64,000 bases of DNA from Tubulanus polymorphus (taxonomy: Eukaryota > Animalia > Nemertea): assembly GCF_964204645.1 (NCBI RefSeq), contig NC_134030.1, forward strand, positions 22,776,210-22,840,209, written 5' to 3'. The position numbers and the translations under genes were made by a program. Position 1 is the first letter of the stretch. Every line of letters starts with the position of its first letter. Shown in pieces: positions 10,693 through 50,500 of the stretch. Under the pieces are notes generated by a model. It worked only from the letters and a program-made list of their open reading frames with translations. It had not been told where the DNA came from and ran no database searches.

Positions 10693-11409
10693 ATTTGTAA
10701 GAAATTGTATGGACTTGGCGTCACTTGTGGAATTCGATCGCATTAAATCCACGAACGAAGAAAGTGATTGAATAGATGCCGGTCGTCAAGTTAACTGATT
10801 TACGGTCAATCGGAAAGTAGTAATAATCGATTCTACTAATCAAGTTTTTTTGCCGTATCGACAGAAAACCTATTGTTATTCGGATGATTATCAACATAAG
10901 GATGTTATGCTATATCGCAGAAAAGCAGGTTGTTATTCAGTTCATTATTATCATTAATGTATATTTTCCACTTATTTTTCGAAAATGAAATTCATCTATC
11001 AGATTCGATAAGTAGCCGCTTCTAAACGATACGTTGTATTCTGAAAGGATATAATGAATCAGCCGAAACGTTGCTCAGATATGAACTCTTCTATTCAGGT
11101 TTCTCATTTTTGGCTGTATTTATTGTGGAATTTCTCGCGTTTATTCTAAAAGGAATATAACAGTCTCTCTCATCTTGCAGATTATATGTATGTGCTGTCC
11201 ATCCTATATAAAACTTAAAATTACTTATTGTCAGACAACACTGGCGGAAATCTAGTACTGCAACTAGCTATCAGCATGTCCCTTCAGGAACCCCGCCGTA
11301 CTCCCGCAATCCTACGGTTTACCTGAAGAAACATATACGTCGAAAATACGCCGAGAAGAGAATTGCTCCGAGAATATCCAAATCAGGTCAGCATCCGTTC
11401 GTTGCTTTC

Positions 11410-26100: not shown

Positions 26101-29100
26101 CGCGCTTGTCTTTGATTTCATGTTGTAATTCGTCATATTTACCTGTTTATAAGTTGTTTGTGATGTCAGTGATTTTCTATATTGATAGATTCTAAACTAC
26201 ATGAATTAGCCGATAAAGAGTTTGAAGATAGGAAATTAGGTACTGTACACATGACAAAGTGTGAAATTCAACATGTTTTATGTTTAAATTTTATCAATGT
26301 TTATTATCGATGTTTATTACAGTCATTAGAGATGCATCAGTCGAACGTGTAAAGACACCTGAAGAAATAGTCACGCTAAAACTGAATATGCCGGACCAAC
26401 TCCGCACTGGTAAGTGATTATACAGTGAAGTGGTACTGTTTGAATTGGAAAATGAATTATGAATATTTTGAAAAGTTGAGAGCGAGGCAAATCAGTTCAT
26501 TACAAATTTTCTGTGTTTTTTAATCGTTTATTCAATTTTTGTAGAGTTGGATTCAGCTGGTCGGGATCCAGTTATTCTGTCGGATCGAGCAGGTATTGTA
26601 TAAGTCTGTTATTAATCTAACCTGTTTAAAAATTTAATACAGTGAAAATGAATTGCGAGTAATTTTGACAAGTTAAGAACGAGACAAATCGGTTCATTAC
26701 AAATTTTCTGTGTTTTTAAATCGTTTATTTAATTTTTGTAGAGTTGGATTCAGCTGGTCGGGATCCAGTTATTTTATGGGTTCGAGCAGGTATTGTATAA
26801 GTCTGTTATAAATCTAACCTGTTTAATGCCACTGATCTCACCATGTATTTCATCGGTCCCAACAGTGGCTGGCTTGATATACTTTTTCTGTAATAACGGA
26901 ATTTTCAGCTTCTTAGGAGCACTAGCCTGGAATATTCTGCAACTGATCTTTGTCCCTCAAAAGACGGTTAACTCTCTTAAGTCCTTCTTGCAAAAAGTCC
27001 TTAATCTGATCATTTAGGAATTACTAGAAAATGTTCTTCTATTTTAAACTCGATTATGAAGAGCAGATCCTGAAAATAGTTTTTCTAACCCGGATTTACT
27101 GGTCTAAATAAATGAAGTTTTAAATTGAAACCAAGCTCAATGAATGTAGTGTCTATGTTTGCTGTTTTTATGTGAATTTCAGTGGAATATTTCAAGGATG
27201 AATTCATTATTGCAATACAATCTGATGAATCATTGAAAACTGCTACTCAAACTGCTTTAGATAAAAGTAAGTTACATCTACAGTAAACTACATTTACATC
27301 TACAATAAACTACATTTACATCTACAGTAAACTACATTTACATCTACAGTAAACTACATTTACATCCACAGTAAACTACATTTACATCTACAGTAAACTA
27401 CATTTATATCTACAGTAAACTACATTTACATCTACAGTAAACTACATTTACATCTACAGTAAACTACATTTACATCTACAGTAAACTACATTTACATCTA
27501 CAGTAAACTACATTTACATCTACAGTAAACAACATTTACATCTACAGTAAACTAAATTTACATCTACAATTAGATAGAGTTATTCACTGAGATTTTCAAT
27601 CATTGAAATTTGTTTGTGGTTTTTTGAAGAATCAAGCAACATCAACGATTTGTTGAGGAAAGGAAACTCGAAAGGTAAAATTGTCTCATGAAACGTGGCT
27701 AGATGTTTGTTTTTACGCACTGAATAATTTCACTGTGTAAAATGATTCAATGATTTCTTCTAATTTCAGTTGTTGATAGAATTTATGGTGATGTGAAAAA
27801 CAGAATACAATCAATTTCTACAGGTTTGTATTTTGATAATTCACTATCAATTCTTATATTTAAATGTGAGATATATTCCCTCCTTTTTAGGTTTTTTCAT
27901 ATCGTATAATTGTTATGATATATCATTTCATTTATCATATGCATATCATGTCATATAACGCTAGCATATACAATATCATCAATCATATATCAAATATCAC
28001 TTATCTCATCACGTCATATCACATATCATATCATTTATGCTTGTAAAACGTAATGTTGAAGGTGATTAGTTTCATTTCATTTTTCATCACGGATTGATTT
28101 ATTTTTATTTCTATTTGTGATTTCAGAGGAATTAAAGGAACGAGGAATCATAGTCTATAGAAGTGAGTAAAATTCCTTAGTTTCAAGTTACCCGTAAACT
28201 CCTAACCTGTATATTCCTAACTCTTAACTCCTAACAGTGAGACTGAACTAAATTCAACCATAGTTAAAGTGAACTGTATGAATTGGCCTGTTTAGATCTA
28301 CTCAATATATGAATTATTGTTGTTTTCAGTAAACGATGAAACAGCGAGTAAGTACTGATAACAACTTACACATTAAAGTCTACATGAACAGATATATGAA
28401 ATGATATGATAAGTTGTGTTTTGATAGCTCTTAAATCCAATGAAACTACTCAGAGTGATTTACAGATGTTGCTTCCTTCAACAGGAAGTATTGGTAAAGA
28501 ACAACATGTTTCACTCTCCCTGCAGTAATCTATTGTGTTTATTCTGTTTCAGTGAAACATATTGAACCAATTATTGAAAACAGAATCCCACAGTTTAAAG
28601 GTGAATACATTATGTTGACTGTTAAGTGTTTAGTATACTAGCAAAGAACCGGCCGTCCTGTACGGGTTTTATCGTGATTGAGTTTGAGTTGATTATTTTA
28701 CTTCTCATGTGGAATACACAGTTATTTCGCGTAAGGTCGACTGTATTTTGTAGGAGGATATTGTGACGCGATAGCAACATAAATAGTTTACATCAGTTGA
28801 CATCATCATAGTTTATAAATATGTCCTTACTCTTCATTAGTTACATTTTAACATTTTATAATTTCAGATTCGCTAGTGACTGTTTTAAAAGAGAAATGTC
28901 AGGCTGTCAGTATTTCGTCATCTGAACCACACTGGGTTTATGATATATCTACTGCGTGTAAGTGCACAGTGAAATCAGTTTGTGATTTATAATAGAATTC
29001 TATTGTATAAAAATTTGTCTATTGTTTATTACATATAGTGTCTGAACTCAGTGAATTTACCGGTGAAACTTTAAAGACAAACACAGATTATTGGAGACAA

Positions 29101-31982
29101 GTCAAAGAATGTTTCGGTAATGGTTTCACTTCTGATTTTTTTTAATGATCAGATTTTTATGTTTTGAATAATAATTGTTTGTTCTGTTTGAATAGGAGAT
29201 GAAATTAACAGTGAAACAAATACAACTGAACTGACAGAAATAGGTGAATATAAAAAAAGATTCAGATAAACAAAAATATAGCATTGAATTTATTGAAGAT
29301 GAAATTCATCAATTTAATCAGATCTTTAGAGGCGTCTGTTTTGAAAGTCGTCACTCTTTGTTCATACTTTGTATCGATGTGAAAATTCATTTATTTATTT
29401 ATTTGTTTTCAGTTGACGAGTGTTTGGGTGAATGCACTGATAAATGGAATACTGGTGAGTACCTCGCATGAGTACCTCTCATGAGTGAATACCTTATTCG
29501 CTAACGCATGAGTATCTCTCACGAGTATTCCTCATGAGTACCTATCATGAGTACCTCTCTTGAGTACCCCTCATAAGCAACCCTCATGAGTATCCCTCAT
29601 GAGTACCTCTCATCATGGACGTATAAACGTATAATCTAGTTTATACGTCCATGCATATATTAACTATCGGGATATGTGATCAGTGTAGTGGTGAGTACAT
29701 GAGTATCAAATAGAAACCCTTAACTGAGTACCCGACCCTGGTACCTGAATTGTGTAATTTGAATGATGTAATTCAGTGCAAACTAAACCAGTTTTTCTGT
29801 GAACTAATGTTTCATGTTTTGATATTTGTAGACTATTTTAAGAACAACAAGATGATTGTAGAGACAGGTAAATATTGTATAGCTCTGATATTCAGCCCAG
29901 TACTGCCCCCTGGTGACTGTATGAGATGTAACTATTCTGTTATTTGTATTTTAGACGAGATTGTTGATGAGATAAAACGCGAATATTTTCAAACTCCCGA
30001 ATTTAGAAGTAAGTTTCCAATAAAATCAGAACCTGTTTTAACAACCAGAACTCAAATATGAATATCTGTATGTATTGTATTATTATTTATAGGATCAGTT
30101 GAGACTGCATTGAATGAAGCTATCGAGAATTCAGGTAATTGAATATTTCCAATAAATTAATTTCCAATTAATTTTTCAATGAAAATTTTGAATTGACTTC
30201 AGAATTGAGTTCAGTTTGGCTGAAAGTGTATGTTTTTATTGTATTAACATATTCCATGTTTACAGATAAATCAAAACAAAACAAAAAACCAGACTATGAA
30301 GCTGCAGGTTTGTAAAACTCTTATTTCTACTAATTTGACCTGACGAATTTCACAGATAAGAAAACTGATTTTGAAATATGTCAGTTATTTCAATTTCCAT
30401 GGTTTCTCGTCGTTACTAGCGTGGTAGTCACCCTTATTGATGATTTACCCCTTAGGGTAACTTTTAAACGTGGTCTATGAAACCAGGAAGATTATGTAAT
30501 ATTCTGTTCAGAATTATATCTTATCATTATTTCAGTGAAATGGATAGCTGATGAAATGAAAGGTAAATTGACTGATAATAAATACTAAATTTCGTGATGA
30601 GTTTGTGTTGATGTTTACAGAATCATTTCTAATTTCAGGTTTCACGGTTAAACCATCTGCAACTTCAGGTATGTAATATTGTTTTATATCTATATATCTT
30701 GTGTGGGTGCCTCATCTGTCAGACAACTGGGCAGGAATTTGAGTAACAATTCACTAAATATCTTGATGTGTTTTCAGAACGTAATGAATTTGCTAAACTT
30801 GCACGAGCAAAAGGTAATGAATAAATTATGTGTTTTAAAATTGATGTTATCGATTTTGATAATGTTTTATGAGGTTACGTTTTCAATTTCTATTTCAGTA
30901 ATGAGTAAATCAGAAGAGTTGATGGATAAGATACGTGCTATAACAAATAAAGGTAATCAATATTGACTTCTATAAACATCTTACTGACTCAATAATTCCA
31001 TATTCATGAATTCATGTTTCCACATTCGTATAACATGTCTTATGGTTCCCAAACCGGAAATTTCAAAATAATATTTCCTGGCTCAAAATATTTGCGTTGT
31101 AAGTTGATAGATTTTCCTCTAGTTCTGGAAATATTTTTGAAATTCAATTTGCGCTTCGTCTTTCTTCGGTGATCTTTCTTGAAAATCACCTTCATCAACC
31201 AATCACCAGTAAAATGTTTATAGTTTGATGCATCAGTTTTTCGGGAATAATTTATTTCATTTTCAGCCGAATTAAGAAGGCTCGGTTTCCTGGTAGATGA
31301 TGAATAGAGTAAGTAAATCATACAGTCGTCACTTTCTGATTTAAACCATTTGATCGAGGTTAAACTAGTTTTGAGGTTAAATGGTTTGAAATGAAATAAA
31401 TTGATGAAATTTAGATGAAATTAAGTTCCATTTTCTCCTGGTTTATGAGGAATCCAGATTTAGAATCGTTTTCCATCAGAAACTAGTTGATTGTTAAAAA
31501 AAGAGTCGTAGAATTTAACCAAATCTCATAATCCGGATTTAACTGATCCTGATTAGGTTAATCCGGTATGGTTCTAATCTCTACTGAACAGTTTAAGAGA
31601 TAAATGAGCAACAATGTTCAATATCATAATATCAAAACTCTTAGAATAAAAAGAGTATGAATTTTTTCCTTAAGAAGATATTCATTCAACGTTTCAATAC
31701 TTTAAATAGCTAAAATATATATGAATAAACAGCATAAAAACAGTTACAAATTAAACAAATTAAGGAAACTTATAGAATACAACAGTGAATATAAGTTACT
31801 GATTGGATATCTAAAGCAGAACAAACTATAAGGTGTTTGTAATTGTATTTGATGTTTGGTTTATATTGTATTCATTTATAGGGCTTAGTAGAATGTTGAG
31901 AGATGATAGTCCTGGATCGATTGTTGATGATAGTAGTGATAGTAGTGATAGTAGTGGTATTGACCTAATGGTTTTATCCTAG
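14133..31982 (+). CDS. Type-B receptor B1: signal exon 14133-14220; Ig-like exons 14783-15073, 15940-16272, 16753-17022; TM exon 17876-17977; ~46 cytoplasmic micro-exons from 18059-18103 to 30899-30952; stop either in exon 31267-31308 (TAG 31305-31307) or in terminal exon 31882-31982
   Basis: Signal peptide MKNLIWLLILLLTISFHSEAVSVLNKRNT. Domain 1 has ITC...YKCVATNSAG (I-set-like). Domain 2 has CTCKA...KWY...QCRL. TM is VAGAVIGILILLILIILFIL followed by WRR. Every exon checked is phase 1-1 and a multiple of 3 with AG/GT ends, except one mutated donor at 25502 (e.g. 20386-20460, 22486-22515, 23973-23990, 25625-25780, 28868-28957). Indels against B2 that I compared are in frame. Confidence 0.8.
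14265..14830 (+). repeat. 82 bp tandem repeat spanning the intron/exon boundary of B1 Ig exon 1 (7 acceptor copies)
   Basis: gatatttcag|cacctgatggag with the AG ending at 14290, 14372, 14454, 14536, 14618, 14700 and 14782. Confidence 0.95.
16320..16720 (+). mobile_element. Interspersed repeat, probably a Penelope-like terminal remnant with a minimal hammerhead-like motif at 16620-16655
   Basis: ctgatga-a-gcttcta-ttcat-tagtagt-gaaa-gctt fits CUGAnGA / stem II / GAAA / palindromic stem III, followed by aataaa. The segment is absent from B2. Confidence 0.5.
18284..19560. repeat. Intronic minisatellite, 47 bp unit, ~27 copies
   Basis: agactggtcttaagttgttagattggttatagaaccaaaatgagctt, starts at 18331, 18378, 18425 and onward. 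Confidence 0.95.
20675..20785. mobile_element. Short hairpin MITE-like insertion
   Basis: Inverted arms agactagtattatctttaacccggggttaac / gttaacccccgggttaaagttaataccagtct. Not seen in the B2 intron. Confidence 0.55.
27273..27570. repeat. Intronic minisatellite, 22 bp unit (tacatctacagtaaactacatt), ~13 copies
   Basis: Period of 22 read directly. It starts immediately after the donor of exon 27183-27266. Confidence 0.95.
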
Positions 31983-32697
31983 AATCGAGTGAGATTTTAT
32001 ACGGAAAAAAAAATAAAAATGAAAGGAAAAAATGCGATTCAAATAAAATTTGTGATATTTAATTGAATAACTGTGGTCATATTAGTAAATTGATAAATTA
32101 ATTCATCAGCTCAATTGTGATAACATTAATCAATATGAACAGATATTATCTGCTTTTATCTCTTGTGTGAAAAATGAATAACATGTTCCTCGTTTTCCCG
32201 CGTCTCTGTTAAAACCTCTCGTTTTGATGTAGTCAGTGGAGGATCAGATTTGTTTGTAGGACTTATATACTGAAATGTGCTACACTGACTACTCAAATAT
32301 ACAGTGTAACTGATGAATTGTACATGAAATACTGAGTGCAACCTACGAGCAATTATCTAAGATAATTGTTAGATAATTGTTCGTAGGTGTAACTGAATTA
32401 TAGTCTAGATGAAATGCAGTGTAACTGAATTATTGTACCGTAGTTGAAATATAGTTTGTAATTATATATCGAGCAGAAATACATTGTAATTGAAATTACT
32501 TTTTACAAAATTATCAGCGGTCTTAGGAGGATTTACTAAAACTTCTCTCAATGCTGAATCTTACAATGTATAATTGTATTTTTATACAATGTAACTGGTT
32601 TAACGATATTACAATAATGTAAGTTAAAAACTGTACAAATTTATTAATGATTGACTTGATCAGTATTATTATTGAAAACAGTGATAAAATTCATTTT

Positions 32698-34377: not shown

Positions 34378-34774
34378 CTGAATATATACATTATCACTTA
34401 CAAACACATGAATGTAATATTTGTGCAATAAAGACACTTCCTGCATACGATGGGCCCTGGAATAATTTTAGAAATACGTGTTGAAACACATCTCTTATTG
34501 TTGTCAACTAGATTTACTTAGTACAGTTTTATTTACCGATGACTTTTCTTCCGCATCTATCAGGATGATCCGGCAGTCGATTTTTATAGATACGGTCATT
34601 TCATTCGGTGTGACATATAGAAAGGTGAGTGACTGAGTTAACTATACAGAAATGTCTCGAATGAAGAGAAACATCATTTGATTCATTTAAAAGTAAAACG
34701 GATAAAACGGGAAGAAACTGATTTTTTTTTGTGCGCAGAATTTTACTGGGAGTTTTTAGATCAGAATACTGAGA

Positions 34775-37700
34775 ATGATGTTGAAGAACTGTTTCGTACT
34801 AATGTGCGTCGTAGTTTTACTACAACTTGGAAATATACACAGTACAGAATTGTCTCTAATGAGGAGAAAGAGACGTAAGTTATTCAAATTATCAGTGACT
34901 CTTTCCTCTTGTTTAGTTTACGCGTAGTATAATCGTTCCACAAACTTAAAACATATCAATTATTTTCAGGTGTCACGCATATTGAACCTCGCCCAGTTCC
35001 CACGGGTCAACTCGACCGGAAAACCCAAGGACAAGATGTAAATTATTCTTGTGAAACAGAGATTGGAAAGTCGGATCGTTCGTTGATATTTCAACAGAAG
35101 AGTCGAGGTTCTGAATCATGGGGCCCGGTTCGAGGTGATATACAACTTCAAACAGATTCCAAAAGGAAATTTCTCGCTAACGCTGAGCTAAAATTCAAAG
35201 CTGATTTCAAACTTCACAACGGATCTTCATTTAGATGTCTTGTTATGGAGAACCCAAAATATCCCGAACCTATCCTGTTTGATACAATCGTAGTTCATCG
35301 AACTGGTAAGTAATAGTTCATTTCCTTATTGTTGTTATGCCATTGGCAAAGTAGATGAGATTAGAATCAATCAAAGCGCGTTTATAAGCATTACAACAAG
35401 ACAGTGAAGTGCGGACGTCGAACAGATTTTGAAAGCGCCCCGATTCAAATAAAATTCAAGTCTCCCTTATCCTAGAGGGGGACCTGGTGGATTACTAGGC
35501 TGATGGAATCAATTTATGATATGTGATGTAAGACGATCTTTTAAGCCCTTTTTAAAATTGTGCTTGTTTTTCATGAACATTGCTAGAAAATTGGCACTTG
35601 ACTGTTTATAATTATTATCGTTCGATTGTGTAATCAAGTGAATATTTCATTTTATATCAGCCCCCTTTTATATTGGCCACACATTTAGTATATATAACTC
35701 GTCGAACACTAGAATGTGGAGAACAGTGTCAGTTTGTTCGTGATGGTTTTGATAATCAGAGCAAATAAACTTCGCAAACTTCCTCATTCATCTTCGAATC
35801 AACAACACTGAAGTGATAACAGTTTATTATTCATGTCATATTCAGTTTCATAAACGTCGAAACGATAACCTGTGCGCTCAAACGTGGTGAACGGATAATA
35901 AGATATAAACCCACTATCTACAAATTAAAAGAATTTAAAAACAAGAATTTATTTGTTCAATCTAAAATATATAGAATACACGACGTTTCGATCTCACCCT
36001 AGAGATCATCGTCAGGTGAGATCATCGTCAGGTGTGACGCCTGTCATCTGACGATGATCTCTAGGGTGAGATCGAAACGTCGTGTATTCTATATATTTTA
36101 GATTGAACAAATAAATTCTTGTTTTTAAATTCTTTTAATCTGTAAATAGTGGGTTTTTATCTTATTAAACTGAAGTGACTTTTCAGAATATATATCGCTG
36201 CAAGTCTAGGCCCTCATTTTGGGTTTGAACCCGATACACTCAATTCAAAATTGATGAAAAAATAGTCTTGAAAGTAATTTGTAGATCCTTAATTTGATAT
36301 AATACAGTGACCTAGTTGTATAAAAGATAATCAGATTCGATATACCCACAATAAACATTGTTGTCATTTCTTGCATATTAATGATGCTGATGTCACGTGG
36401 TTAGTGTTGTGATGAAATCGTCGACTATTAGCCACTAAGGTTGGGAGATCGAAGCCTGATTCTTTTTAATTTTCGTTTCAGACAAAACGAATACTGATCT
36501 ACCAAAGGTGAGTATCTGGCTGTTAAACCCATACTATTGTTAAACTGTGTCCAGAAACAAATTGAACCCATACAACCCAACGACATGGGTTCATAGTCAA
36601 ACTAAACAAGCACAACTGTGAAACCTGGATCCAGAGTATCATCATTTTTTTGAAAGTTTAAGAAGTCGCTACATTGCGCAACAACTAGTAAATATCCCTA
36701 ACTTAAGACAATTTATGAATCTTTTTACATCACAAGACCCAAACATCTTGAGGAAGCTAGCAGTATTTATAAAAAAGGCACATAGCCTCATCTAGCCATC
36801 GCTGTGCACATCACGTGTATAATGATACGTCTAGAAGAAGTAACTGTCACTGTATATTATAAATGTAATTGGAGTAACCGTAATTGTATAACTGTAAATC
36901 GTTAATTTTTTGTATCCTGTGCTCGAAAAAAATGTATAATTTCTGGAGCAATAAATTAAATTTGAATCTGAGTAGAATAAAATGCACTTTTATAAATATA
37001 TCCTTAAAGTGAACGACTAATTGTAAGACAATTAGGTAAAGATGAGTACGATGTAATTTACCGCGCTTTTTAGATTCGTTACAGGTTGAATATTTTTTTC
37101 ACGTTTTCTAAATTTCTATGCGATTATATGGTCTTTCAAATTTTATTATTCTTACATCTTTCAGACTACATCAGACCTCGATCACCGGACCATCTACATC
37201 ACGTGTGGAGTGACTGGATTCATTTTGATCGTTCTCATCGCAGTATTCACTACTCGCAGGTACGAACTCGACCGGAAAACACGGCATACACTGTGTGTGG
37301 TTCCGTCGAAATACCTATTAACCCTTACCCTCAACAAAATGTTCATATCCACATGATCTCTGTTACGTCTAAAGATTGTGACAGAGTTGATACATTCTGC
37401 AATAAATCCCTTGATATAACACATTACTGCCCAGTTATTTCATACATTCAAGCAAGTTTTCGTTGGCAATAATCTAGAATATTTCAGAGTATTATGAAAA
37501 TGAGAGCATAAAAGGGCTAAAAGAGCTCGTTAGCAAAATGTTTGGTTGTAGTATTTTTTCTTATTTGGAATTCTACAAAAGCGGAACTAGATTTCCTGTG
37601 TGAAATTGTTAAGTTTCATACTCACATTAGATAAATCTTTAAGCATGATGAATTACATGATTACTATCATCACAAAGCCGTTACTTTTTATTGTGTAACT

Positions 37701-38849
37701 CAGTAGGCGACATACAACATAACAAATGTGTATCATAGATAAACTACATACTTTCCTCACGTAATTTTATGCTGCATAAATTACCCCCATTTCAGATGCA
37801 GACGTCGATCGTCCGGTGAAGGTCACGTGGAGACTTCAACACCACAGCAACTGCTCGAAGCAACAGACGTGTTGTTAAACGCCTACGAAGATCCGGATGA
37901 TTACAGAAATTCCGATAATGTTTCAAACAGAAAACTTGTGAGAAAATCTGAAACTAGATTACAACATAACGTACAAACTCGTAAAGCCACAACTCCTTAT
38001 ATGGACATGGGAGCCGAGAAGGGCAAAGATACAACTCCTTATATGGATATGGGAGCCGGGAAGGGCAAAGATACAACTCCTTATATGGATATGGGGGCCG
38101 GGAAGGGCAAAGATACAACTCCTTATATGGATATGGGAGCCGGGAAGGGCAAAGATACAACTCCTTATATGGATATGGGGGCCGGGAAGGGCAAAGACAC
38201 AACTCCTTATATGGATATGGGGGCTGGTAAGGGCAAAGACACAACTCCTTATATGGATATGGGGGCCGGTAAGGGCAAAGATACAACTCCTTACATTGAT
38301 ATGGAAGCCGGGAAGGGCAAAGGCACAACTCCTTATATGGATATGGAAGTCGGGAAGGGCAAAGACACAACTCCTTATATGGATATGGAAGCCGGGAAGG
38401 GCAAAGATACCACTCCTTATATGGATATGACAGCTGGGATTGGCAAAGATACCACTCCTTATATGGATATGGAAGCCGGGAAGGGCAAAGATACCACTCC
38501 TTATATGGATATGGAAGCTGGGAAGGGCAAAGATACAACTCCTTATATGGATATGGAAGCCGGGAAGGGCAAAGATACCACTCCTTACATGGATATGGAA
38601 GCCGGGAAGGGCAAAGATACAACTCCTTATATGGATATGACAGCTGGGAAGGGCAAAGATACAACTCCTTATATGGATATGACAGCTGGGAAGGGCAAAG
38701 ATACAACTCCTTATATGGATATGACAGCTGGGAAGGGCAAAGATACAACTCCTTATATGGATATGGAAGCCGGGAAGGTGGAAAGTTTGAAGAGAGATAC
38801 TACAGTTACATATATAAATTTGGATATTGTGGAGTTTGGAAAGAGATAA
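34775..38849 (+). CDS. Type-A receptor A2 (~536 aa); exons 34775-34874, 34970-35305, 36482-36507, 37165-37259, 37796-38849
   Basis: In-frame GT-AG junctions with the same phases as A1. Signal/propeptide MMLKNCFVLMCVVVLLQLGNIHSTELSLMRRKR, an Ig-like exon, TM IYITCGVTGFILIVLIAVFTT followed by RR, and a last exon that continues into ORF 37827..38849. Confidence 0.87.
35897..36166. mobile_element. ~270 bp near-perfect palindrome made of two inverted Penelope-like terminal fragments
   Basis: 35897-36015 is the reverse complement of 36048-36166. It is absent from the homologous A1 intron (~5660). Confidence 0.7.
36048..36082 (+). ncRNA. Minimal hammerhead ribozyme-like motif (mirror copy on the minus strand at 35981-36015)
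   Basis: ctgacga-t-gatctc-tagggt-gagatc-gaaa-cgtc gives a CUGAnGA core, perfect 6 bp stem II, GAAA and palindromic ACGU stem III, as in Penelope-like elements. Confidence 0.6.
37985..38780 (+). repeat. Coding tandem repeat, 42 bp / 14 aa unit (DTTPYMDM[GET]AGKGK), 19 copies
   Basis: Read directly from the sequence and ORF 37827..38849. Confidence 0.95.
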
Positions 38850-41518
38850 TATAAAACTGGTTTTCTTACCTCTCGTGGAATCTGATCGCATATAATCTGC
38901 TGAAGAAAGTGACTAAATAGATGCAGGTCGCAAAGTAAACCGATTAAGGGTCAACTGGATATTCTAATGATACGACCCAATTCAATTATTCCATTGATAT
39001 TTTAAGATATTATCAAAGGGTTTCAGTAGTATAGGAGTTGTTTTGCCCTATCGACAGAAAACCTATTTTTATTCCGATGATTATTATCGCAGAAAAGAAT
39101 CTTGTTTTTTGTACATCATTATCGTTAGGGTTTTCTCGTAATAACAGATTGTATACACTTGTAAATTCGCTCATTGAAAAATGATGTGAAATGCATGGGA
39201 TAACGTATTATTTTCCTCCTGGGTTCAGCTTCATGAAAAGATTGAAGCTTAAATTGCAGTTAAGTTTGAATTGTTGTCCTCATTGAAAACATGAAGTAAC
39301 AAATAGCAATTACACCTAGAAATCGTGGAGTTAAACTTGTGTGCGAAACCGAGCCCTGGATAATTGTGATTACGTGATTGCTAAGAAATATTGGCTAGTT
39401 AAAGTGAAACAACATGTATCCAAGATGGGAAAATGATGTTCAAGCGATTGATTTAATTGTGAAGAACGATTCGAATGCATGAAATCTTTCCATCAGTTTA
39501 AATGAAAAACGTTATGATCTGTTTTCTGTGCCTTTCCAATAGTTTGTGATTTTCATATTCAAATCTTCGAATGTATTTTATGCAAACAAGATTAATCGCG
39601 ACTTTTCAGAAAAAAATCCAATGCTCAATGTTTTTCTCTCGTTTTTAAATTGTTTACTTACTCCTGATTTTATCATTTATACTTTTCCGTGAAATAAATA
39701 TAATAACTCTTCCCAATTCACTCTCATCGCCTATCTTTGCTTCATTCTTTTTCATTGTCTTTTCTCCAATTTCTCATTCTGATTGGGCATTCAAATACAT
39801 TTGAAAGATAAAGATAATTGATCGAAGTTTATTCAACGTTTTTTCTCTCTATCTTCAAGAGTGCTTCTGGCTTTTGCTTGGTCTCATTAGAAAATCACCA
39901 TACGAATACATCATCAATGACTTATCCGAGCGGTGCGATCGGGTTCGAGTCCCCTGACATATTTTTTCAGTTAATCATACGGTTCATGGATGACTTTGTG
40001 TCTGTCTAAAGTACATAGTTTTAGTTTTATGAGGTATTATCATTTATATGACTCATATTCTATTATATAAGAGCCATTAGACTTTTATCAATCTGTTAAA
40101 CTCAGTTAGTTTCACTTTGTCTCATTCAGGTTTGCTGTGACAAATTTTCTATGGTTTTCAGAAGGTTCGCAGATCACTTGTTCCTTTCTAAAGTACATTG
40201 TCTTAGTTTTTTTATGAGGTGTTATCATTTATATCGACGTATATTCCATCCACGCAATATTTAGAGCCATTATTCCGGTTGTACATATTCTAGCCCCAAT
40301 GATCTTAATCAATCCATCAAATCAGTTACTTTCACTTTGTCTCGTATTAAACACAAATAAACTGCTTTAGTCTCAGGTTTCATATGACATATTTTTTTCA
40401 TTTAATCATAAAGGTTCACTTTGTGCCTAGATATGTACCAACCAATCACCTGTGTGCCTATAGTAGATAAGAACCAACTGATGAGTTTTCCCAGTATTGA
40501 CCTATATTCTATTCGTCCGTGTCGTTTATCGTCGACTCATTACGTTTGTGTAGTCTCACCCTATAGCATTGTATTTCATAGGATACTTTCATTTTCCCAG
40601 ATATTTTCTTTAAGCTGATAGAAGATCTTATGTGAAGTTAACAATGTATCATGTAGCTTGTTTGACTTTTTAAATGCGTGTCAGAATGAGGATTGTATTT
40701 TGAGATACTTTCATTTTCCCAGATATTTTCTTCAAGCCGAATGAAGATCATACGTGAAGTTAACAATTGATTGTGCAGATTGTTTGACTTTTTAAACTGC
40801 ATCAGAACGAGGATTATTTGTTTAGCATTAATTGTTATGGATATTTAGAGTAGTTTCACTTTTTCTGATACACAATTTTTGAATTGTTTCATTCAGGTAA
40901 AACTTATTTCCTCCTAGATTTCATTTCACATCAGATTTTGCTTTCAGGAAACGGTTTAAGCTTTAGACGGTTAAATTCCGATTGGTTTCCTCGTTACATT
41001 TCGTCTTTCCTAGAAAATGCGATGGGGGTGAGTAAACCCGGTCCATCGCTTTTTCCGTCAGTCATCTCCGATCCGAGTTTTTGATCATTCGCCGTCGTAT
41101 CTCGTTTAGATATCACAAATTCAGTTGTATTTCGTTATTTCTGAAGATTAATCATAGGATATAACCGAAATCTTCCAGATTCTAAATAAACCTCGTCAAA
41201 CTTGATATACTAACCAATAATAACAGCTGAACCGAAAATTCAAGTTATCTTCAGTACAAAATTCATGTTTTTTATGCAGTGACTGATACAACACTTGGAC
41301 GTAGACAAACATTTCCTATACTGTGCATACAGATATTTATATGTTTAGTTTACGAGTGAACACCAAATTCTATAGATGAAAATAAGAATATTGATTAAAA
41401 TAAGAAAATGAGAATATAATTATCAATATAATTGTTACTAGTATTATGTTCAATATTGTTTGTATGTGACGATGATCTGAAGTTTGTGTCTTTATTTCTA
41501 GGTAATGAATGAATCAAG

Positions 41519-44500
41519 ATGAGGAATCAATCGAGAAATCTGCAGCAGTTTGAATTGATCTGCGTGATTTTACTGTTGATTCTGATCCCGTACAGCAACA
41601 GCCCACAAGCGTTTAGACTCTTTAAGAGAAATACAGGTAAGACAACGTGAAAGAACATATCATAGAGTATATATGGAAAACGTATTACATAAGATAAAAC
41701 TTATCACCAGACTTGGAAACTTGAAATATCTGGGACAAAATGATAATAGTTCAACTACATTCACCTCGTTACGTACCAATTCAATTCAATTTAATCTTTA
41801 TTGCACCGGGATATATTAATGACATTATTGACTTTTTACAATAAAAAGGAGAACAAGAATCAAGTGTCAAAATGAAGAGTACGTGTATAGTATATAAACC
41901 CGGAGATGAAAGAAACAGATAAAATTCATAGCAGTCTAAATACAAACACGATAAGATAAAGCAGATACACTAGTTTCTCTATACTATGACTAGGATTCAA
42001 TAGTCCGAGACTGTTCATATTAGTAAGAGGTAAAAAATCTGATTCAATAAACAAGTTCATATCATATCATGTACATACACATAGTTGAATCCAGCAAGAA
42101 ACATTTATAAAATTCCCAAGGCTTCAAGCCATCTGTACAGTTGACATTACGGTTCTGAATTAACATTCATTTGAGAAACACCAGCATTCCGGAAAATTTC
42201 TATATAATTCTTCAAGAAGAGTTTTCCATTGTCAGACCACATTGCATTACAACGTGAAATTCATCCTCAACAATATTACATCTATCACATAACCTACTCT
42301 CGTTTTCGCGCGCTAAAAGTGAATATAAGACTATACGATATTCAATCTGATGTTTTGAAAAATGAGCGCTAACTATCGCAAAAATGGGGACTTTTTTATT
42401 GCTGAATATTAAGCTTTGTAGCCAACTCGAAATACAGGGGCAGCACGATTCAATGTGAATGTATTACCGGGTACAAGAATATTATGTATATTGTGTATTT
42501 GATATTTCAGCACCTGATGGAGTTGTACTGAACAGTGTGAATGTATTACCGGGTACAAGAATATTACGTATATTGTGTATTTGATATTTCAGCACCTGAT
42601 GGAGTTGTACTGGACAATGTGAATGTATTACCGGGTACAAGAATATTACGTATATTGTGTATTTGATATTTCAGCACCTGATGGAGTTGTACTGGACAGT
42701 GTGAATGTATTACCGGGTACAAGAATATTACGTATATTGTGTATTTGATATTTCAGCACCTGATGGAGTTGTACTGAACAGTGTGAATGTATTACCGGGT
42801 ACAAGAATATTATTTATATTGTGTATTTGATATTTCAGCACCTGATGGAGTTGTACTAGACAGTGTGAATGTATTACCGGGTACAACAATATTACGTATA
42901 TTGTGTATTTGATATTTCAGCACCTGATGGAGTTGTACTGAACAGTGTGAATGTATTACCGGGTACAAGAATATTACGTATATTGTGTATTTGATATTTC
43001 AGCACCTGATGGAGTTGTACTGGACAGTGTGAATGTATTACCGGGTACAAGAATATTACGTATATTGTGTATTTGATATTTCAGCACCTGATGGAGTTGT
43101 ACTGAACAGTGTGAATGTATTACCGGGTATAAGAATATTACGTATATTGTGTATTTGATATTTCAGCACCTGATGGAGTTGTACTGGACAGTGTGAATGT
43201 ATTACCGGGTACAAGAATATTACGTATATTGTGTATTTGATATTTCAGCACCTGATGGAGTTGTACTGAACAGTGTGAATGTATTACCGGGTATAAGAAT
43301 ATTACTTATATTGTGTATTTGATATTTCAGCACCTGATGGAGTTGTACTGGACAATGTGAATGTATTACCGGGTACAAGAATATTACGTATATTGGGTAT
43401 TTGATATTTCAGCACCTGATGGAGTTGTACTGGACAGTGTGAATGTATTACCGGGTACAAGAATATTACGTATATTGTGTATTTGATATTTCAGCACCTG
43501 ATGGAGTTGTACTGGACAATGTGAATGTATTACCGGGTACAAGAATATTACGTATATTGGGTATTTGATATTTCAGCACCTGATGCAGTTGTACTGGACA
43601 GTGTGAATGTATTACCGGGTACAAGAATATTACGTATATTGTGTATTTGATATTTCAGCACCTGATGGAGTTGTACTGGACAGTGTGAATGTATTACCGG
43701 GTACAAGAATATTACGTATATTGTGTATTTGATATGTCAGCACCTGATGGAGTTGTACTGGACAGTGTGAATGTATTACCGGGTACAAGAATATTACGTA
43801 TATTGTGTATTTGATATTTCAGCACCTGATAGAGTTGTACTGGACAGTGTCAATGTATTACCGGGTACAAAAATATTACGTATATTGTGTATTTGATATT
43901 TCAGCACCTGATGGAGTTGTACTGGACAGTGTGAATGTATTACCGGGTACAAGAATATTACGTATATTGTGTATTTGATATTTCAGCACCTGATGGAGTT
44001 GTACTGGACAGTGTGAATGTATTACCGGGTACAAGAATATTACGTATATTGTGTATTTGATATTTCAGCACCTGATGGAGTTGTACTGAACAGTGTGAAT
44101 GTATAACCGGGTACAAGAATATTATTTATATTGTGTATTTGATATTTCAGCACCTGATGGAGTTGTACTAGACAGTGTGAATGTATTACCGGGTACAAGA
44201 ATATTACGTATATTGTGTATTTGATATTTCAGCACCTGATGGAGTTGTACTGAACAGTGTGAATGTATTACCGGGTACAAGAATATTACATATATTGTGT
44301 ATTTGATATTTCAGCACCTTATGGAGTTGTACTGGACAGTGTGAATGTATTACCGGGTACAAGAATATTACGTATATTGGGTATTTGATATTTCAGCACC
44401 TGATGGAGTTGTACTGGACAGTGTGAATGTATTACCGGATATAAATATGTTACTGTCGCAGGAAGGTAAAACTGTTAGTATTACCTGTAAACAGAGCAGC

Positions 44501-47500
44501 TCTACAGCGACAGGTGTACACTTCCAGCTGCAAGTGAACAGTGGAGCAGGAGGGACCTGGACTCCAATACCACTCGGTATATCGACGGTGTGGAAAATTG
44601 TACCCGAGGCTGGTAAACAGTATAAATGTGTAGCCACTAATTCAGCAGGAACAAAAGAAAGTCAAATCTACCAATCAGATGTGATTAGTGAGTATGGCGG
44701 GAAACCTGTATGGTTCTCCAAAAATGCAACTGAACCTAATTTCAATATTGTAGAATGCAAATGGGCTAAAAAAAAAACCTTACGACTTCAAAGGGACTCC
44801 CACAATCAGTTCAGAAAAAGACGAAAGGATCGTGAAGTAAATGAATTTATGTTAGATCTTCCTTTCAGCGTTAAATTCATTGTCATCATCAGGCAAATTC
44901 AAGCGTTGACTCTACAAGAACTTATCGTCTTTTCTGAACTGATTGACAGATCTCTGGTGCTGACTCGGATGACAATTACTAAACCAGTAGCCTTCACACA
45001 TTTACTGTTCATTGTCGGTTATCTGACAATACATGTATTTTTTGTGTCAAATTTCAACGCTCTTATTCTCTGTGGAAACAAGTCCGCATATCCTTTCATT
45101 CAGCACTTATCAAATAATGCTGGGAAAAATAGAAGAAATGTTTCCTGTGCACTTGGTATTTTTTGTATATAATTTGTATTATAGGTATAAAGATAAATGA
45201 AAACCCGTGTAAACTGCATGAATTCAAACCATCACTGGCTTGTACTTGTGAAGCCACTAGTAAGATTGGTAATCCAAACATCAAAGTAAAATGGTATGCT
45301 GATGGATATAGAGGTTCCAAAAAAATTGAGATTTTCAAAGAGCAAGGGGTAAATACTGCGCTGAAAGATGGATTAATCAACAGAAATCAGATGTATTATC
45401 TGTACAAGATTGACACAACATTGACTCAATGTCGTTTATGGAATTATAATGGGATAGAGTTACCGGAACCACTTCAAAAACAAATACTACATCAAACTAA
45501 AATGGACGTTACGTGTAAGTTGTAACATATTTTCATGAGAAAATTTCCATACAATATCAAACTGAAGTCTGATAGTTAGAACATTCTGCCGTGGTGTCCA
45601 CATATGAATGTCCCTGTCTTGTGACGTAAGAATTTAAGCTTTTTCGGTTAGAAGTTATTTATTTAGATGAAAAAATCAAACGTGTCCCTTGAGAGTTGGA
45701 CTTAAATCAAACATTATCGCCCATTTTCTCCTTTTACCTCATATTTATTATTTAATTATTGTAACAACACAAAAGTTCGCATTGTATTCCCATTAATATG
45801 TAATGTAAAAACCATTGCAGTAAAATAGTTGAAAAATTATAATATTAAAAACCAATTCAGTTGAAAAGGATTCAATTCAATTAAAGAATTTAGCAAACAT
45901 TGAATGATATCCAAAAAGTTCTTCTTTTCAGATTTTCCTGATGAAATTCTGACGAACGATACTTATACGGGACAACCTGACATTAGAACTGAAGGAGAAG
46001 TTGTAGAATATATTTGTAGAACAGAAGGTGGAAGGCCCGATCCTACAGTGATATACCAACAGAAGAGAAGAGGTTCTGAACAATGGGAGCCAATTCCTGA
46101 TCCACAACCTCGTAAAGTACCCCTCAAAGGGACGTTAAAAGGTTTTGACACGACCTACAAGTTCAATGCTGATTTCAAACTGCACAATGGAACGTCATTT
46201 CGATGTGCTGTAGAGGAGAACCTTACGTTTCCAGAACCTCAGCAATTTAATCCAATCATCGTTCATCGTAAGTAACAGATTTATTGTTGTATTTCAGAAA
46301 AGATCTTCGGCTTTTGGTGTTAAGAGTTCTCTTTGGAATAGTACCAACCCCAGTCCTGTATACCTATCCACCCTCGGCATATGGCAGATATTTGTAACAA
46401 CTTTGATTTTGTGTTTTCAATCAGATTTTGCTGCACCAGTTTACAAGAAATCCAGTGAAAATAAAACAAATGCAGCGTATATTGTGACAGTTAATAGTTA
46501 CCCATTGACTCAACAAGTTACATGTGACCCTCCAGCTGTCGTTCAAAAACTATCAACCTATCAGTGGAATATAACGATACCTATCGTAAATAGTACCACA
46601 ACTGACTATAGAGGGCGGTGTTTGGCTGACGGTATTAATGAAAGGGTTATTGATGTCGCTGGTTATCATAACGCCGGTCCAACTGATGATCTAGGTAAGA
46701 TTCCGGGTCACAAACGGATGATTTTTATCTGAATCTGAACAAATGTTTTAGGTCCTCGGCGTCATCATCTCTTAACTGGATGAATTTTATGCAGTCTTAC
46801 GTCGCCGTAGGAAAAGTCGCAACAAATTCGTCTTTAAGATCCGCCATTTTATATTTTCATTTCTATTTACTAAGTTTAAGTCATCATTTGGATAAGCCAT
46901 TTACATATTGATCTGAAGACATTACTCAAAGTTATCATCGTGGAAAGTCCAAAATATTCAGCTTTCTAACTTTTTATTTAGAAGTCGTTTAACCCGATCA
47001 AGGAACAATTAGTTTCAGTTAGTTATCGGAAATTGCTGAACTTAAAGTAAATTCAAATATTAATCACTTGTGGATATTTTACATTCAAATTTCCAATTCT
47101 ATTTGAAAGTTTTTGCTTCAATTCAATTGCTGATACTTTTATCACTAGTTACAATAGAAATATTTACAGCTTTATATAATCTGATTTAATTGCTGCTCAA
47201 TTTCAGTTTCTGATGGAGGGTATGGAGGCAGAGTGTTCGGTGCTGTAATCGGTGTACTGATATTAGTGATTCTGATAATACTGTTTATACTGTGGCGTCG
47301 TGGCTGCTGTAAGTTTTACCTAAAACCATCATTAAACAGTGATGAAAAAACTGTTGAAATAAAATACTAGGTCCAGTTCCACAGTTCTGAGTTAAGATTT
47401 AACTCAGAGTTAACTCATTCAAAATGAACTGATTTTAACTCAGAGTTAACTCTAACTCACAACTGTGGAACTGGGTCCTGTATTATTTCTAATTGACAGT

Positions 47501-50500
47501 GCGGTGCAGAAAACCTAATGATGAACTGTGTAGATGTGGAAATTGTAAGTTCTGTTATAATTCATTAACACAATGCTTAAAATTTAAAAATAGTTTACAA
47601 GCCTTGAGGGATTCGGGGTCTTTTAGGTTGCCAGATACATTTCATTCTCAATTATCTGTGAAAATCTTTAATCTCGGGACCCTAATTGCACAGTCTTCTT
47701 CCGAATATGTGGTCGTCAACTATTAGACTGGTCTTAAGTCGTGAGATTGGTTATAGAACTAAAATATGTACAGACTGGTCTTAAGTTGTTAGATTGGTTA
47801 TAGAACCAAGATGAGCTTAGACTGGTCTTAAGTCGATAGATTGGTTATAGAACTAAAATATGTACAGACTGGTCTTAAATTGTTAGATTGGTTATAGAAC
47901 CAAAATGAGCTTAGACTGGTCTTAAGTTGTTAGATTGGTTATAGAACTAAAATGAGCTTAGACTAGTCTTAAGTTGTTAGATTGGCTATAGAACTAAAAT
48001 GAGCTTAGACTGGTCTTAAGTTGTTAGATTGGTTATAGAACCAAAATGAGTTTAGACTGGTATCAATTTGTTAGATTGGCTACAGAACTAAAATGAGCTT
48101 AGACTGGTCTTAAGTTGTTAGATTGGTTATAGAACTAAAATGAGTTTAGACTGGTATCAATTTGTTAGATTGGCTACAGAACTAAAATGAGCTTAGACTG
48201 GTCTTAAGTTGTTATTGGTTACATAACCAAAAATGAGTTAAGACTAGTCTTGAATATAAGCCGTAACTGTAAAACTAGCTCCTACAAAACATTTAGTTCA
48301 TTGTCAATTAAGATGATGTAATCTGCAATCTATAAGATTATCCGCTGACAAGACCGGTCTCGACAGTGGCAGATAATTGAGAGTTCATGAGGTCTGAAAT
48401 TGGCCTCACCTCTAGATACGCTCAATATCGCATACATGATTATTGCAAGTTAACATAATTTGTTTGTTTGTTTTCAGTGACTTGCAAATTACCTACTGCC
48501 GATGAACCTGATAATAAGGATGACTCCTCAGATGAACTGTGTCATTGTTGCTGCTGTGAGTTCTATATATAAACTGATAATGATTAAGAGTCAGTAACTG
48601 TAGAATAAACTGTTGTATTATTTTCTATTTGCAGTGCTGTTGAGAAGGGAGCCATGTACATGTGATTACTGTAAGTTGTATTAACATTGAAAACATTGAT
48701 CACAAAATAAATTCCCAAACTCTCGAGAAATTAATTTTCTAATTCGCAAACTGGACGGTTGATGAAGGTTACGCAGTATCATCGGTTCAATTGTCTCAAA
48801 ATCTATCATACCATTAGCTACCATTGTGTGTGGCATTTACGATATCCAAATCACAGCATCATCCATTTTCTTGGTTGGATCAATGTGTCAGGTTTTGTTG
48901 TGTGTCAGGTGAACGTGCATCATGTAGGACAAACAGTATTTCTGTTTTCTAATTTACAGTCACGCGTTTGGGTCCGGAATCTAAAGATGTGATTGAATTG
49001 TTGCGTTGGACAAGTGAAACCTGGTATCGAAGAGGTAAGATTCTCTCACATGATTTAATGCACATATTCTCAGATATCGGTTTGATGATTTTAGGTGTTG
49101 TTTTCTCTTTGTAGATCATGAGAATTGGGTGAAAACACGTGACCAACTGCAGCCGGGTATTTATTAACCCTTTATTTCCATAACATGTATAATATCTTGC
49201 ATGAACACAGTACCTGATGCCCTAATGTAATGAAGCAGTACATGTTGTTTATAATAATCGCTGTGAATCATGTACAGGATGATGGTTTTTAATTTATATA
49301 TTTGTAGCTGGAGACTTTGAGGTCATTGACACATTCAGTCCATGTATAATCATCATATGAATTGAATCAAAATTGTTTATTTATCAATCAACTATTTGCT
49401 TGTGACGTGAGTGAATTCATTTGGAACTTGATTTACTATGAATTATCTTTCATTTCGTTTATAGAAACTGTTAGAATAATTGTCGATGTTTACGGAACTG
49501 AGAATAATTGGGAGATAACGAGAGATAAGGATAAACAAGGTAAGAGGAGTGATGACTCAGTTGCCAGAGGAAGTGCAGAACCGACTGATTGGTCCCCTGC
49601 AAGTCTCTCTAAACACGACACTTCTGCCTCCTATCTTCATCCAGCAGTAATTCAAACTGTTTGATGCACAGTTTATTTGACTATTGAACAAATAATTTCT
49701 ATATTTCATTTCAGCAAAAGCTATCAAAGAATTCCTGTTTGGACAGTTATCAAGTGATCAAAGTAAGTAATGGTTTACACATAGTTTGTGTTAAGTTCAT
49801 GTACACATGCACATTAATGTGAACATGCACATGTGAGTTGTGTGAACATGTACATGTGAGTTATTGTTACATGTACATGTGAGTTATGTATTCATGTTAT
49901 GATAACGTGTACATGTGCATGTGAGTAATACATGCATGTACACGTGAATGATACATACATGTGAGGCATGCGAACATGTGCATGTGAATTAAGTATACAT
50001 GTTCATGTAAGTTTACATGCACATGTGAGTAATGTGTGCATGTACATTTGATTGATACATAGTAAGTTGTGAGTTGCGGAAACATGTTCATGTAAGTTAA
50101 CATGCACATGTGATTTGTTACATGCGCATGTGTATTAAGTTCGATCAGTGTTTATATATTTCTAGGTATGTTGAATTTGGTGAAAAAAATTCTAAGTAAG
50201 TTTATAAAATCTCATATGAATTTTCTCTTCAACTCAAACCATGTCTCTAAATGTGTTAATTATCTATTGACAGGAAAATACGCGACAATAAACAATTTGA
50301 AAATGAAACTATCAAATGAGATCGGTAAGAGTTGATTAAATACAGTTATTGATGTATGAGTTTATTGATTATTATTCTACCGTCAACTCATTTTGTAAAT
50401 GTATTACAGATATATTACTGAACAAGAAGAGGTCAATAGATGGCGCTGATGCAGTTTACAATAGAGATGAAGGTACATGATTATCTACTGTTCAAATGAA

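Follow-up and report, generated by a model that had tools for sequence, protein, structure and literature searches.

Phosphorylated YxxM motifs are textbook docking sites for p85, the regulatory subunit of class IA phosphoinositide 3-kinase (PI3K). Among the molecules that use this motif are CD28, ICOS, DAP10 and CD19, which are kinase-less receptors of the immunoglobulin (Ig) family, or associated with it, whose short tails recruit PI3K via YxxM (YMNM, YMFM, YINM). These contain one or two motifs per chain and no array. The subject here is A2, a gene of the palaeonemertean Tubulanus polymorphus located within a window of 64,000 nucleotides, the whole stretch of DNA analysed (C6:22776210-22840209 of the 268 Mb assembly). 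A2 is predicted to encode a small Ig-like receptor whose cytoplasmic tail contains 19 YxxM motifs in tandem. To our knowledge, no natural protein has one optimal p85 site repeated 19 times, in near-perfect tandem, on a kinase-less receptor. A literature search returned no paper describing a 19-fold YxxM array on such a receptor, and none on YxxM arrays in invertebrate receptors. What is new in A2 is that a minimal Ig receptor carries a single optimal site as exact tandem repeats of DNA, within a family whose genes have between 1 and about 34 units. The YMNM units of CD28-type receptors are ligands of p85 as well as of Grb2, and they are found again in A1, a duplicate of A2 in the same window, and in other paralogs.

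Multiple docking sites are known from several other systems. The adaptors IRS-1/IRS-2 and Gab present multiple YMxM motifs to the SH2 domains of p85, and YMxM is reportedly also a preferred substrate of the insulin-receptor kinase, according to work attributed to Shoelson in 1992 and Songyang in 1993. These adaptors are cytosolic, with PH/PTB domains and roughly nine scattered and differing sites, whereas the A2 array is fused to a transmembrane receptor. In the bacterial effectors CagA (EPIYA), Tarp and Bep, the number of tandem phosphotyrosine (pTyr) units varies between alleles and scales the recruitment of SH2 proteins. These are, however, injected proteins whose motifs differ and are read by other partners (SHP2, Csk). 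In p130Cas, many repeated Tyr motifs form a multivalent SH2 docking surface after phosphorylation by Src-family kinases, and a separate Src-docking site drives processive phosphorylation. The latter is paralleled by an invariant membrane-proximal Tyr in the family to which A2 belongs. The p130Cas substrate domain contains 15 YxxP motifs (PMC2553404). Unlike the units of A2, these are of the Crk/Nck type, lie in a cytosolic protein and are not exact tandem DNA repeats.

ErbB3/HER3 resembles the proposed A2 scaffold as a receptor unable to signal by its own kinase, which acts as a PI3K docking platform via several YxxM sites that are phosphorylated in trans. For HER3, six sites that bind p85 have been reported (PMC4279368; PMC8449365). 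These are dispersed and non-repeated, in a protein with a pseudokinase and an EGFR-type ectodomain. The tandem units of A2, 19 in number, are nearly identical, its ectodomain is a single Ig domain and it has nothing kinase-like; the two proteins are not homologous in sequence. The tetrapeptide YMDM itself occurs in two proven p85-binding sites, Y740 of PDGFR-beta, which is part of the standard PI3K-activating (bis)phosphopeptide (PMC11750134), and Y721 of KIT (PMC5913247). In PDGFR, Y740 and Y751 are 11 residues apart and engage both SH2 domains of p85; the spacing in A2, 14 residues, is comparable. PDGFR-beta and KIT differ from A2 in having one or two sites inside the kinase insert of an active receptor tyrosine kinase.

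The YxxM array and the constraint on its units

The tail of A2 is encoded by a single open frame (37797-38849, +) of 350 residues and a stop codon, with stops in the other two forward frames. The original prediction, made from the letters of this DNA, had listed 18 YMDM motifs and one YIDM at a spacing of 14 residues, preceded by YEDP and followed by VTYINL. Translation reproduces this exactly, with the Tyr of the array at tail residues 68, 82 and onwards to 320 in a strict 14-residue period. Tandem Repeats Finder detects a 42-bp repeat at 37989-38778 (18.8 copies, 93% matches, no indels, score 1272). Placed in register, the array consists of 19 units with the DNA consensus ACAACTCCTTATATGGATATGGAAGCCGGGAAGGGCAAAGAT, encoding TTPYMDMEAGKGKD. 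The repetition is due to tandem duplication rather than chance. Subtypes of the unit sit in blocks, G-type (units 1-7), E-type and T-type, and these point to stepwise local duplication in the building of the array. Two open reading frames on the reverse strand across the array (264 and 310 residues) have neither splice context nor homologs, and were rejected as repeat artefacts.

For a comparison between paralogs, 20 further tail exons were fetched and units were chosen by their flanking residues only, which leaves the four core positions unbiased. The set comprises 79 unique DNA units from 15 intact paralogs, which are not independent of one another due to shared ancestry. The Tyr codon is TAC in 41 units and TAT in 30, and is replaced in eight (by His, Phe, Arg or Val). 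At the other two-fold codons, pooled, there are 27 synonymous to 102 replacement cells, compared with 30 to 8 at the Tyr codon (Fisher p = 1e-10, overstated since the cells are non-independent). The Met at +3 is retained in 67/79 units. Position +1 is Met, Ile or Val in 70/79 (Met in 49, Ile or Val in 21) and position +2 is Asp or Asn in 73/79. A similar comparison is possible within the A2 array, where the TTPYMDM core shows seven synonymous cells (ACA/ACC, TAT/TAC, GAT/GAC) and one replacement, an M to I change at +1 that preserves YxxM. In the linker, 11 cells are synonymous and 18 are replacements (core vs linker, Fisher p = 0.019). The expectation that the Tyr and the +3 Met would be better conserved than other positions of the unit was borne out for those two codons, although the remainder of the unit is also well conserved.

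Tyr and the Met at +3 are strict, +1 is Met, Ile or Val, and +2 may be any polar residue, a pattern which matches the preference of the p85 SH2 domains, reportedly defined by Songyang in 1993 as pY-[M/I/V/E]-x-M. Such a pattern would not be expected of a generic YxxPhi signal, in which Leu, Ile or Val at +3 would serve equally. In A2, the YxxM motif (pY-[M/I/V/E]-x-M) is located in a cytoplasmic, disordered segment. A p85-type gene is present at G000:C2:27959217-27961507 (+), with SH2 domains at 27959217-339 and 27961388-507 flanking an iSH2 region at 27959921-27960302; the iSH2 matches (49.6 and 39.1 bits) are over the Pfam cut-off. This gene, which is split over exons, is expected for an animal. 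Its presence removes an objection and proves nothing about binding.

Receptor architecture and flanking motifs

A2 consists of five exons (Table 1) separated by GT-AG introns in phases 1/1/0/2, with a coding sequence of 1611 nt for 536 residues. The exons were used one by one in searches, folding and look-ups. The predicted product is a type I membrane protein with a signal peptide, one V/I-type Ig-like domain, a short Thr/Asp stalk, a transmembrane helix and a disordered tail. This gene model and topology are well supported by the sequence and by annotated paralogs, and are very probably correct. The signal peptide MMLKNCFVLMCVVVLLQLG was recognised by inspection and hydropathy, and the product of exon 1 is 94-97% identical to the N-termini of the annotated paralogs P0001 and P0002. 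Counterparts of the exon 3 peptide are found in P0002 (DNTTTDPPK) and in P0001 and P0003 (DHSTTDLPK). Exon 4 is homologous to the transmembrane region of paralogs, and its helix IYITCGVTGFILIVLIAVF reaches a Kyte-Doolittle 19-residue maximum of 2.58. The exon-by-exon architecture is the same as that of the NCBI-annotated paralogs, such as P0002 (...FTIRRCRRRSPGEGHVETS...).

In the gene model, the tail exon joins the transmembrane exon in frame; the end of exon 4 (...TTC ACT ACT CGC AG) and the start of exon 5 (A TGC AGA CGT CGA) form an AGA codon and read FTTR-R-CRRRSS. The last base of the acceptor ag is 37795, and the start given earlier for the tail, 37796, is where the exon begins, with a base that completes the split codon. 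The tail is placed in the cytoplasm, as had been proposed, because of the N-terminal signal peptide, the single transmembrane helix and the basic cluster RRCRRRSS directly on its C-terminal side. The description of A2 as a kinase-less receptor also stands. Pfam searches with the Ig exon, the transmembrane exon, the tail and seven paralogs returned nothing above threshold. A receptor tyrosine kinase was thus rejected, as there is no Pfam kinase domain in the tail or the seven paralogs and the tail ends with a stop codon after the array.

Two other candidate identities of the tail were rejected. The immunoreceptor tyrosine-based activation motif, YxxL/I-x(6-8)-YxxL/I, does not fit, as A2 has Met at +3 and a Tyr-Tyr distance of 14 rather than 10-12 residues. 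Reflectins, which share YMDM in the literature, are cytosolic, poor in Lys and Ala and rich in Arg, Tyr and Met. The A2 tail matches no Pfam family, is attached to a membrane helix and is rich in Thr, Gly, Asp, Lys and Met (11.7% Lys and 13.4% Gly), and the shared tetrapeptide is coincidental.

Table 1. Features of A2, with positions counted from the first base of the window
Feature	Position	Strand	Description	Source or remark
Exon 1	34775..34874	+	ATG and signal peptide (MMLKNCFVLMCVVVLLQLGNIHSTELSLMRRKR); ends phase 1; donor gtaagt	
Exon 2	34970..35305	+	Ig-like ectodomain, phase 1 to 1; Cys27...Trp50...Cys89; one NYS sequon	
Exon 3	36482..36507	+	26-nt micro-exon, (D)KTNTDLPK stalk, phase 1 to 0; acceptor tttcag, donor gtgagt	
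Exon 4	37165..37259	+	Stalk end and transmembrane helix, TTSDLDHRT-IYITCGVTGFILIVLIAVF-TTR; ends phase 2 (AG|gt)	
Exon 5	37796..38849	+	Entire cytoplasmic tail, 350 residues and stop; first base completes AGA (Arg), then CRRRSSGEGHVETS...	
YEDP	37884..37895	+	Membrane-proximal, tail residue 30 (NAYEDPDD = residues 28-35)	
YRNS	37902..37913	+	DDYRNSD, residue 36; YxN type, Asn at +2	Missing from the original prediction
YxxM array	37989..38786	+	19 x 42 bp, unit TTPYMDM(G/E/T)AGKGKD	Tandem Repeats Finder and manual register
VTYINL	38805..38822	+	Tail residues 337-342; fits the ITIM consensus and pYxN	
Stop codon	38847..38849	+	TAA	

The ectodomain encoded by exon 2 is a divergent Ig domain, since none of the Pfam Ig models reaches even E = 1 against it. 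The residues C27, W50 and C89 are invariant in the 11 aligned sequences (A2 and 10 paralogs). AlphaFold2 models the domain as an all-beta sandwich, with a mean predicted local distance difference test score (pLDDT) of 85.7 and a predicted template-modelling score (pTM) of 0.79. The top Foldseek matches in the PDB are Ig domains of the V/I type, from shark VNAR, CD79b, the C1 domain of MyBP-C and the D1 domain of Rst (E about 1e-4, TM-scores of 0.6-0.7).

The membrane-proximal Tyr is invariant in 10 paralogs (alignment column Y221) and is followed at +3 by Pro, Leu or Ile (YEDP, YEEL, YDDL or YDDI). The assignment of YEDP as a Crk/Nck/Abl-type site holds within one subfamily, the A-type, which has Pro at +3, and fails elsewhere, where +3 is Leu or Ile. 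On this alignment, the ancestral site looks more like a Src-family SH2 ligand (pYEEI-like) than a Crk/Abl site. By analogy with p130Cas, it is a reasonable guess that this Tyr docks a kinase which then works along the array.

The motif at the end of the tail, VTYINL, is common to A2 and the neighbouring paralog P0002 only, in which it reads VTYMNL. Other family members stop at ...SLKEETVHT, where A2 goes on with ...SLKRDTTVTYINL, and still others carry a YMNPEAL/TYLQL/LYSYATVEY module. VTYINL may represent a second kind of pTyr site, the reader of which would be either a Grb2-type adaptor or a SHP/SHIP-type phosphatase. It had been regarded as an immunoreceptor tyrosine-based inhibitory motif (ITIM) and thus as a phosphatase brake. 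The fit to the ITIM consensus stands; however, the motif occurs once in the tail and has a counterpart in one paralog, and its Asn at +2 fits a Grb2-type pYxN site equally. There is no second ITIM in the A2 tail and no immunoreceptor tyrosine-based switch motif, and phosphatases of the SHP type are best engaged by two sites. The chances are even that VTYINL is a Grb2-type adaptor site or one more YxxPhi signal instead of an inhibitory motif. The conservation of Asn at +2 in the sole paralog with this type of motif favours such a role, as does the abundance of YxN sites elsewhere in the family (YMNM, YMNV, YMNPEAL). Against it, Val at -2 and Leu at +3 are both conserved, in agreement with (I/V/L/S)xYxx(I/V/L). 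The genome also holds two loci of SH2-SH2-PTP (protein tyrosine phosphatase) organisation, as in SHP-2/Corkscrew, at C7:4118074-4125084 (-) and C7:19099445-19105016 (+). The sequence therefore argues weakly for a brake, which is one of two equally likely readings of the motif.

Three sequencing runs from one study cover the locus, on a comparison with 34400-38000 (3601 letters), which reaches as far as the beginning of the array. Their contigs span introns as well as exons and contain no splice joints, from which it follows that these runs are DNA. Apparent joints at 35.9-36.2 kb and 36.8-36.9 kb are those of high-copy repeats. At 35852-36214, within intron 2, the summed contig depth is 65,000-118,000 compared with about 30-50 nearby, and many contigs end or jump there. 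The A1 intron is without this stretch (A1 5664-5712 vs A2 35861-36413), which is probably the insertion of a transposable element or a miniature inverted-repeat transposable element. At window position 37936, the DNA contig of run X1 has C for T, changing Leu to Pro in NRKLVRK; paralogs carry Pro (NRKPVRK), and the difference is probably allelic.

Proposed PI3K docking and the competing readings

The best reading of the A2 array is that of a PI3K docking scaffold. It can be held with about even confidence, based on the identity of the motif, the SH2-like pattern of substitution and the presence of a reader in the genome. In the proposed mechanism, clustering of the ectodomain by a ligand would bring in a cytoplasmic or co-receptor tyrosine kinase, for which the membrane-proximal Tyr (YEDP in A2; YEEL or YDDI in relatives) may be the docking point. 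The recruited kinase would phosphorylate the array, and each pYMDM unit would then bind an SH2 domain of a p85-type subunit. One receptor could hold many PI3K complexes, or bivalently bind both SH2 domains of one p85, leading to strong local production of phosphatidylinositol trisphosphate. A2 would be PI3K-selective because every one of its units has Asp at +2. In A1, by contrast, Asn predominates at +2 of the Tyr units (YMNV/YMNM, Grb2-type), and every other unit has Phe for Tyr.

Several observations weigh against this reading. The entire 14-residue unit is well conserved, beyond the Tyr and the Met; gene conversion between arrays could mimic selection, and the units are non-independent observations. 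Phe replaces Tyr in 15 of the 34 units of A1 with the M-x-M context kept (PFMNM), which could mean a role independent of phosphorylation, or merely the recent amplification of a 96-bp super-unit. A Pro at -1 is not typically preferred by Src-family kinases, and YMDM fits the endocytic YxxPhi motif too. A2 is without RNA evidence, since the locus is represented in the runs by contigs of DNA only, and the literature search found no paper on this family and no phosphorylation or binding data for any of its members.

It is possible, though unlikely, that the length of the array has no function. A2 would then be a young, possibly unexpressed or decaying member of a birth-and-death family, and its array a neutral coding minisatellite of which one or a few units suffice. 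Recent local duplication is indicated by the 93% identity of the units and by stretches of a single subtype, paralogs manage with 1-14 units, and several tail exons of the family contain stops. A2 itself is absent from the annotated proteins returned, in addition to the missing RNA evidence. It has also been reported that a single YxxM is both required and enough for HER3 to associate with p85 (PMC4279368). On the other hand, the frame is open over 1053 nt while the other two forward frames are stopped, and the five exons are intact with good splice sites. The single replacement in the array core, set against the 18 in the linker, and the constraint on the motif across paralogs also argue against this reading. 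A role of the module without phosphorylation is very improbable. In such a role it would be a short linear motif of Met and an aromatic residue for another partner, or a multivalent low-complexity region for clustering. The PFMNM units of A1 show that Phe is tolerated in an otherwise intact unit, and the flanks DTTP and EAGKGK are conserved too. Outside A1, however, Phe is rare (2/79 unique units, vs 71 with Tyr), and the Tyr codon combines heavy synonymous turnover with few replacements. The other tail modules of the family are Tyr-centred (YMNPEAL, TYLQL, LYSYATVEY), which points to pTyr signalling in general, and neither reflectin nor any other Pfam family is found in the tail.

The array could also be composed of YxxPhi sorting signals, in which +3 is bulky and hydrophobic and which the mu subunits of adaptor protein (AP) complexes recognise. 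A2 would in that case be an endocytic or phagocytic receptor with an array that sets the efficiency of internalisation. YMDM, YIDM and YINL all fit this motif, the tail is cytoplasmic and unstructured, and the best-kept position of the unit is the Tyr, which mu2 binding requires as well. The difficulty lies at +3. YxxPhi accepts Leu, Ile, Phe, Val and Met, and Ile, Leu or Val would result from six of the nine possible single-base changes of ATG, yet only about three replacements of the +3 Met are to Ile or Val. By contrast, the +1 Met has changed to one of these in 21 units, an asymmetry that fits a Met-specific pocket such as that of the p85 SH2 domain and not a generic hydrophobic one. We also know of no sorting signal in the form of a 19-fold array, and on balance sorting is quite improbable as the role of A2.

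The PI3K scaffold can be extended to a wider proposal, in which the family forms a self/non-self or immune receptor system of nemerteans. The gain of each receptor would be set by the copy number of pYxxM and the quality of the signal by single-residue edits, with Asp or Asn at +2 separating PI3K-only from PI3K and Grb2 output and a change of Tyr to Phe silencing a unit. A2 may cross-link with the two-SH2 p85 into PI3K condensates at the membrane, and the alternating A and B pairs may act as paired receptors with opposite or graded outputs. As a whole, this extended proposal is improbable.

The receptor family in Tubulanus polymorphus

A search with the tail exon returned 16 annotated proteins of T. 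polymorphus, all named "uncharacterized protein", with tails that are 61-74% identical and an architecture matched exon for exon. None of the annotated proteins returned (P0001-P0028) is encoded by A1 or A2. The closest protein, P0002, reads MMLRNCFVLMCVVVLLQLG... Ig ...DNTTTDPPKTTSDPHHRTIVILYITCGATGFILIVLIAVFTIRRCRRRSPGEGHVETS...YEDPDD..., followed by four YMDM units and the end VTYMNLDAKFVKR. In its own genome, the tail exon has at least 59 matches, mostly at 17.4-22.8 Mb of C6, on one chromosome arm, with a few on C9, C11 and C19; several contain stops. A profile of ten members gave 16 matches below 1e-30 against 1.84 billion representatives. The strong matches checked by name are multi-Ig "B"-type proteins of T. 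polymorphus (823-2188 residues), and the weaker ones are low-complexity matches in molluscs and a plant. A feature search of the ESM Atlas gave no usable match. By these searches, the family is large, clustered and fast-evolving, and is seen only in T. polymorphus in the library searched. Its tail module is a 14-residue unit, DTTP-Y-[MIV]-[DN]-M-EAGKGK, which on the sequences compared has been amplified by unequal crossing-over to lengths specific to each gene, 19 units in A2. Variation in repeat number, proposed earlier as a means to tune the signal, is seen at the level of paralogs. The tail may be regarded as a shuffled module, because in some members (P0007, P0013, P0015, P0016) the same transmembrane-and-tail cassette stands behind unrelated ectodomains.

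Self-comparison of the window reveals a tandem duplication, A1-B1-A2-B2, in which A1 (4313-10800) matches A2 (34512-38954) in five blocks. The A and B genes alternate as duplicated pairs. B1 (14265-32000) and B2 (41519-55633) encode multi-Ig receptors, and the protein P0025 (1144 residues) is 89-100% identical to the B2 exons that it matches. When aligned, the Ig domain of the A type corresponds to the third one of the B-type proteins (profile 37-154 vs residues about 245-364 of P0018, P0024 and P0025). The A1 tail exon (8644-10692) encodes an open tail of 682 residues, built from a 96-bp super-unit which alternates DTTPYMN(V/M)GAGKAATLKK with VS(T/S)PFMNMEAEKVK. Its 34 units comprise 19 with Tyr (6 YMDM, 4 YMNM, 8 YMNV and 1 YMNL) and 15 with Phe. 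The tail contains an EIYSYALVEF module at its middle and ends ...SLKKNTILHR, without VTYINL. In many tails of the family (L006, L016, L018, L012 and others, on C9 and C6 of G000) there is a second conserved Tyr module, GPGIEEDTYMSTEGAI...DTDQYMNPEAL..TYLQL..DTDEP..DDVELYSYATVEY, at times duplicated and at times inserted between YxxM units. A search with PF00102 found dense matches to the tyrosine-phosphatase domain at G000:C12:1.07-1.47 Mb, many with internal stops, which suggests a tandemly expanded family of PTP-like genes or pseudogenes.

A protein of the scallop Ylistrum balloti (XP_060076754.1, P0020) has a similar organisation. It is a type I receptor with FN3-type repeats and a tail of about 45 tandem 14-residue units, STTPYVDSTTVTSQ (residues about 1000-1340), which share the TTPY core and the period of A2. 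The motif differs, being YVDS rather than YxxM, and the sequence is a low-quality "mucin-2-like" model whose match may be a low-complexity resemblance rather than homology. P0020 is a possible second example, which suggests that tandem Tyr-unit tails occur in another spiralian.

If the PI3K reading is true, the A2 tail is an unusually dense docking scaffold. Should the array not be phosphorylated, it would still clearly exemplify a minisatellite within coding sequence, in a gene family restricted to one species. If it is phosphorylated, the family would offer a natural experiment on how the valency of a motif sets PI3K output, with paralogs of 1 to about 34 units and their D/N and Y/F variants as a ready-made allelic series. 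It would also mean that, in receptor families of invertebrates, minisatellite dynamics can diversify the signalling tails, and that diversity is not limited to the ectodomains. For the Nemertea, a phylum with almost no functional data, a phosphorylated array would provide the first handle on receptor signalling.

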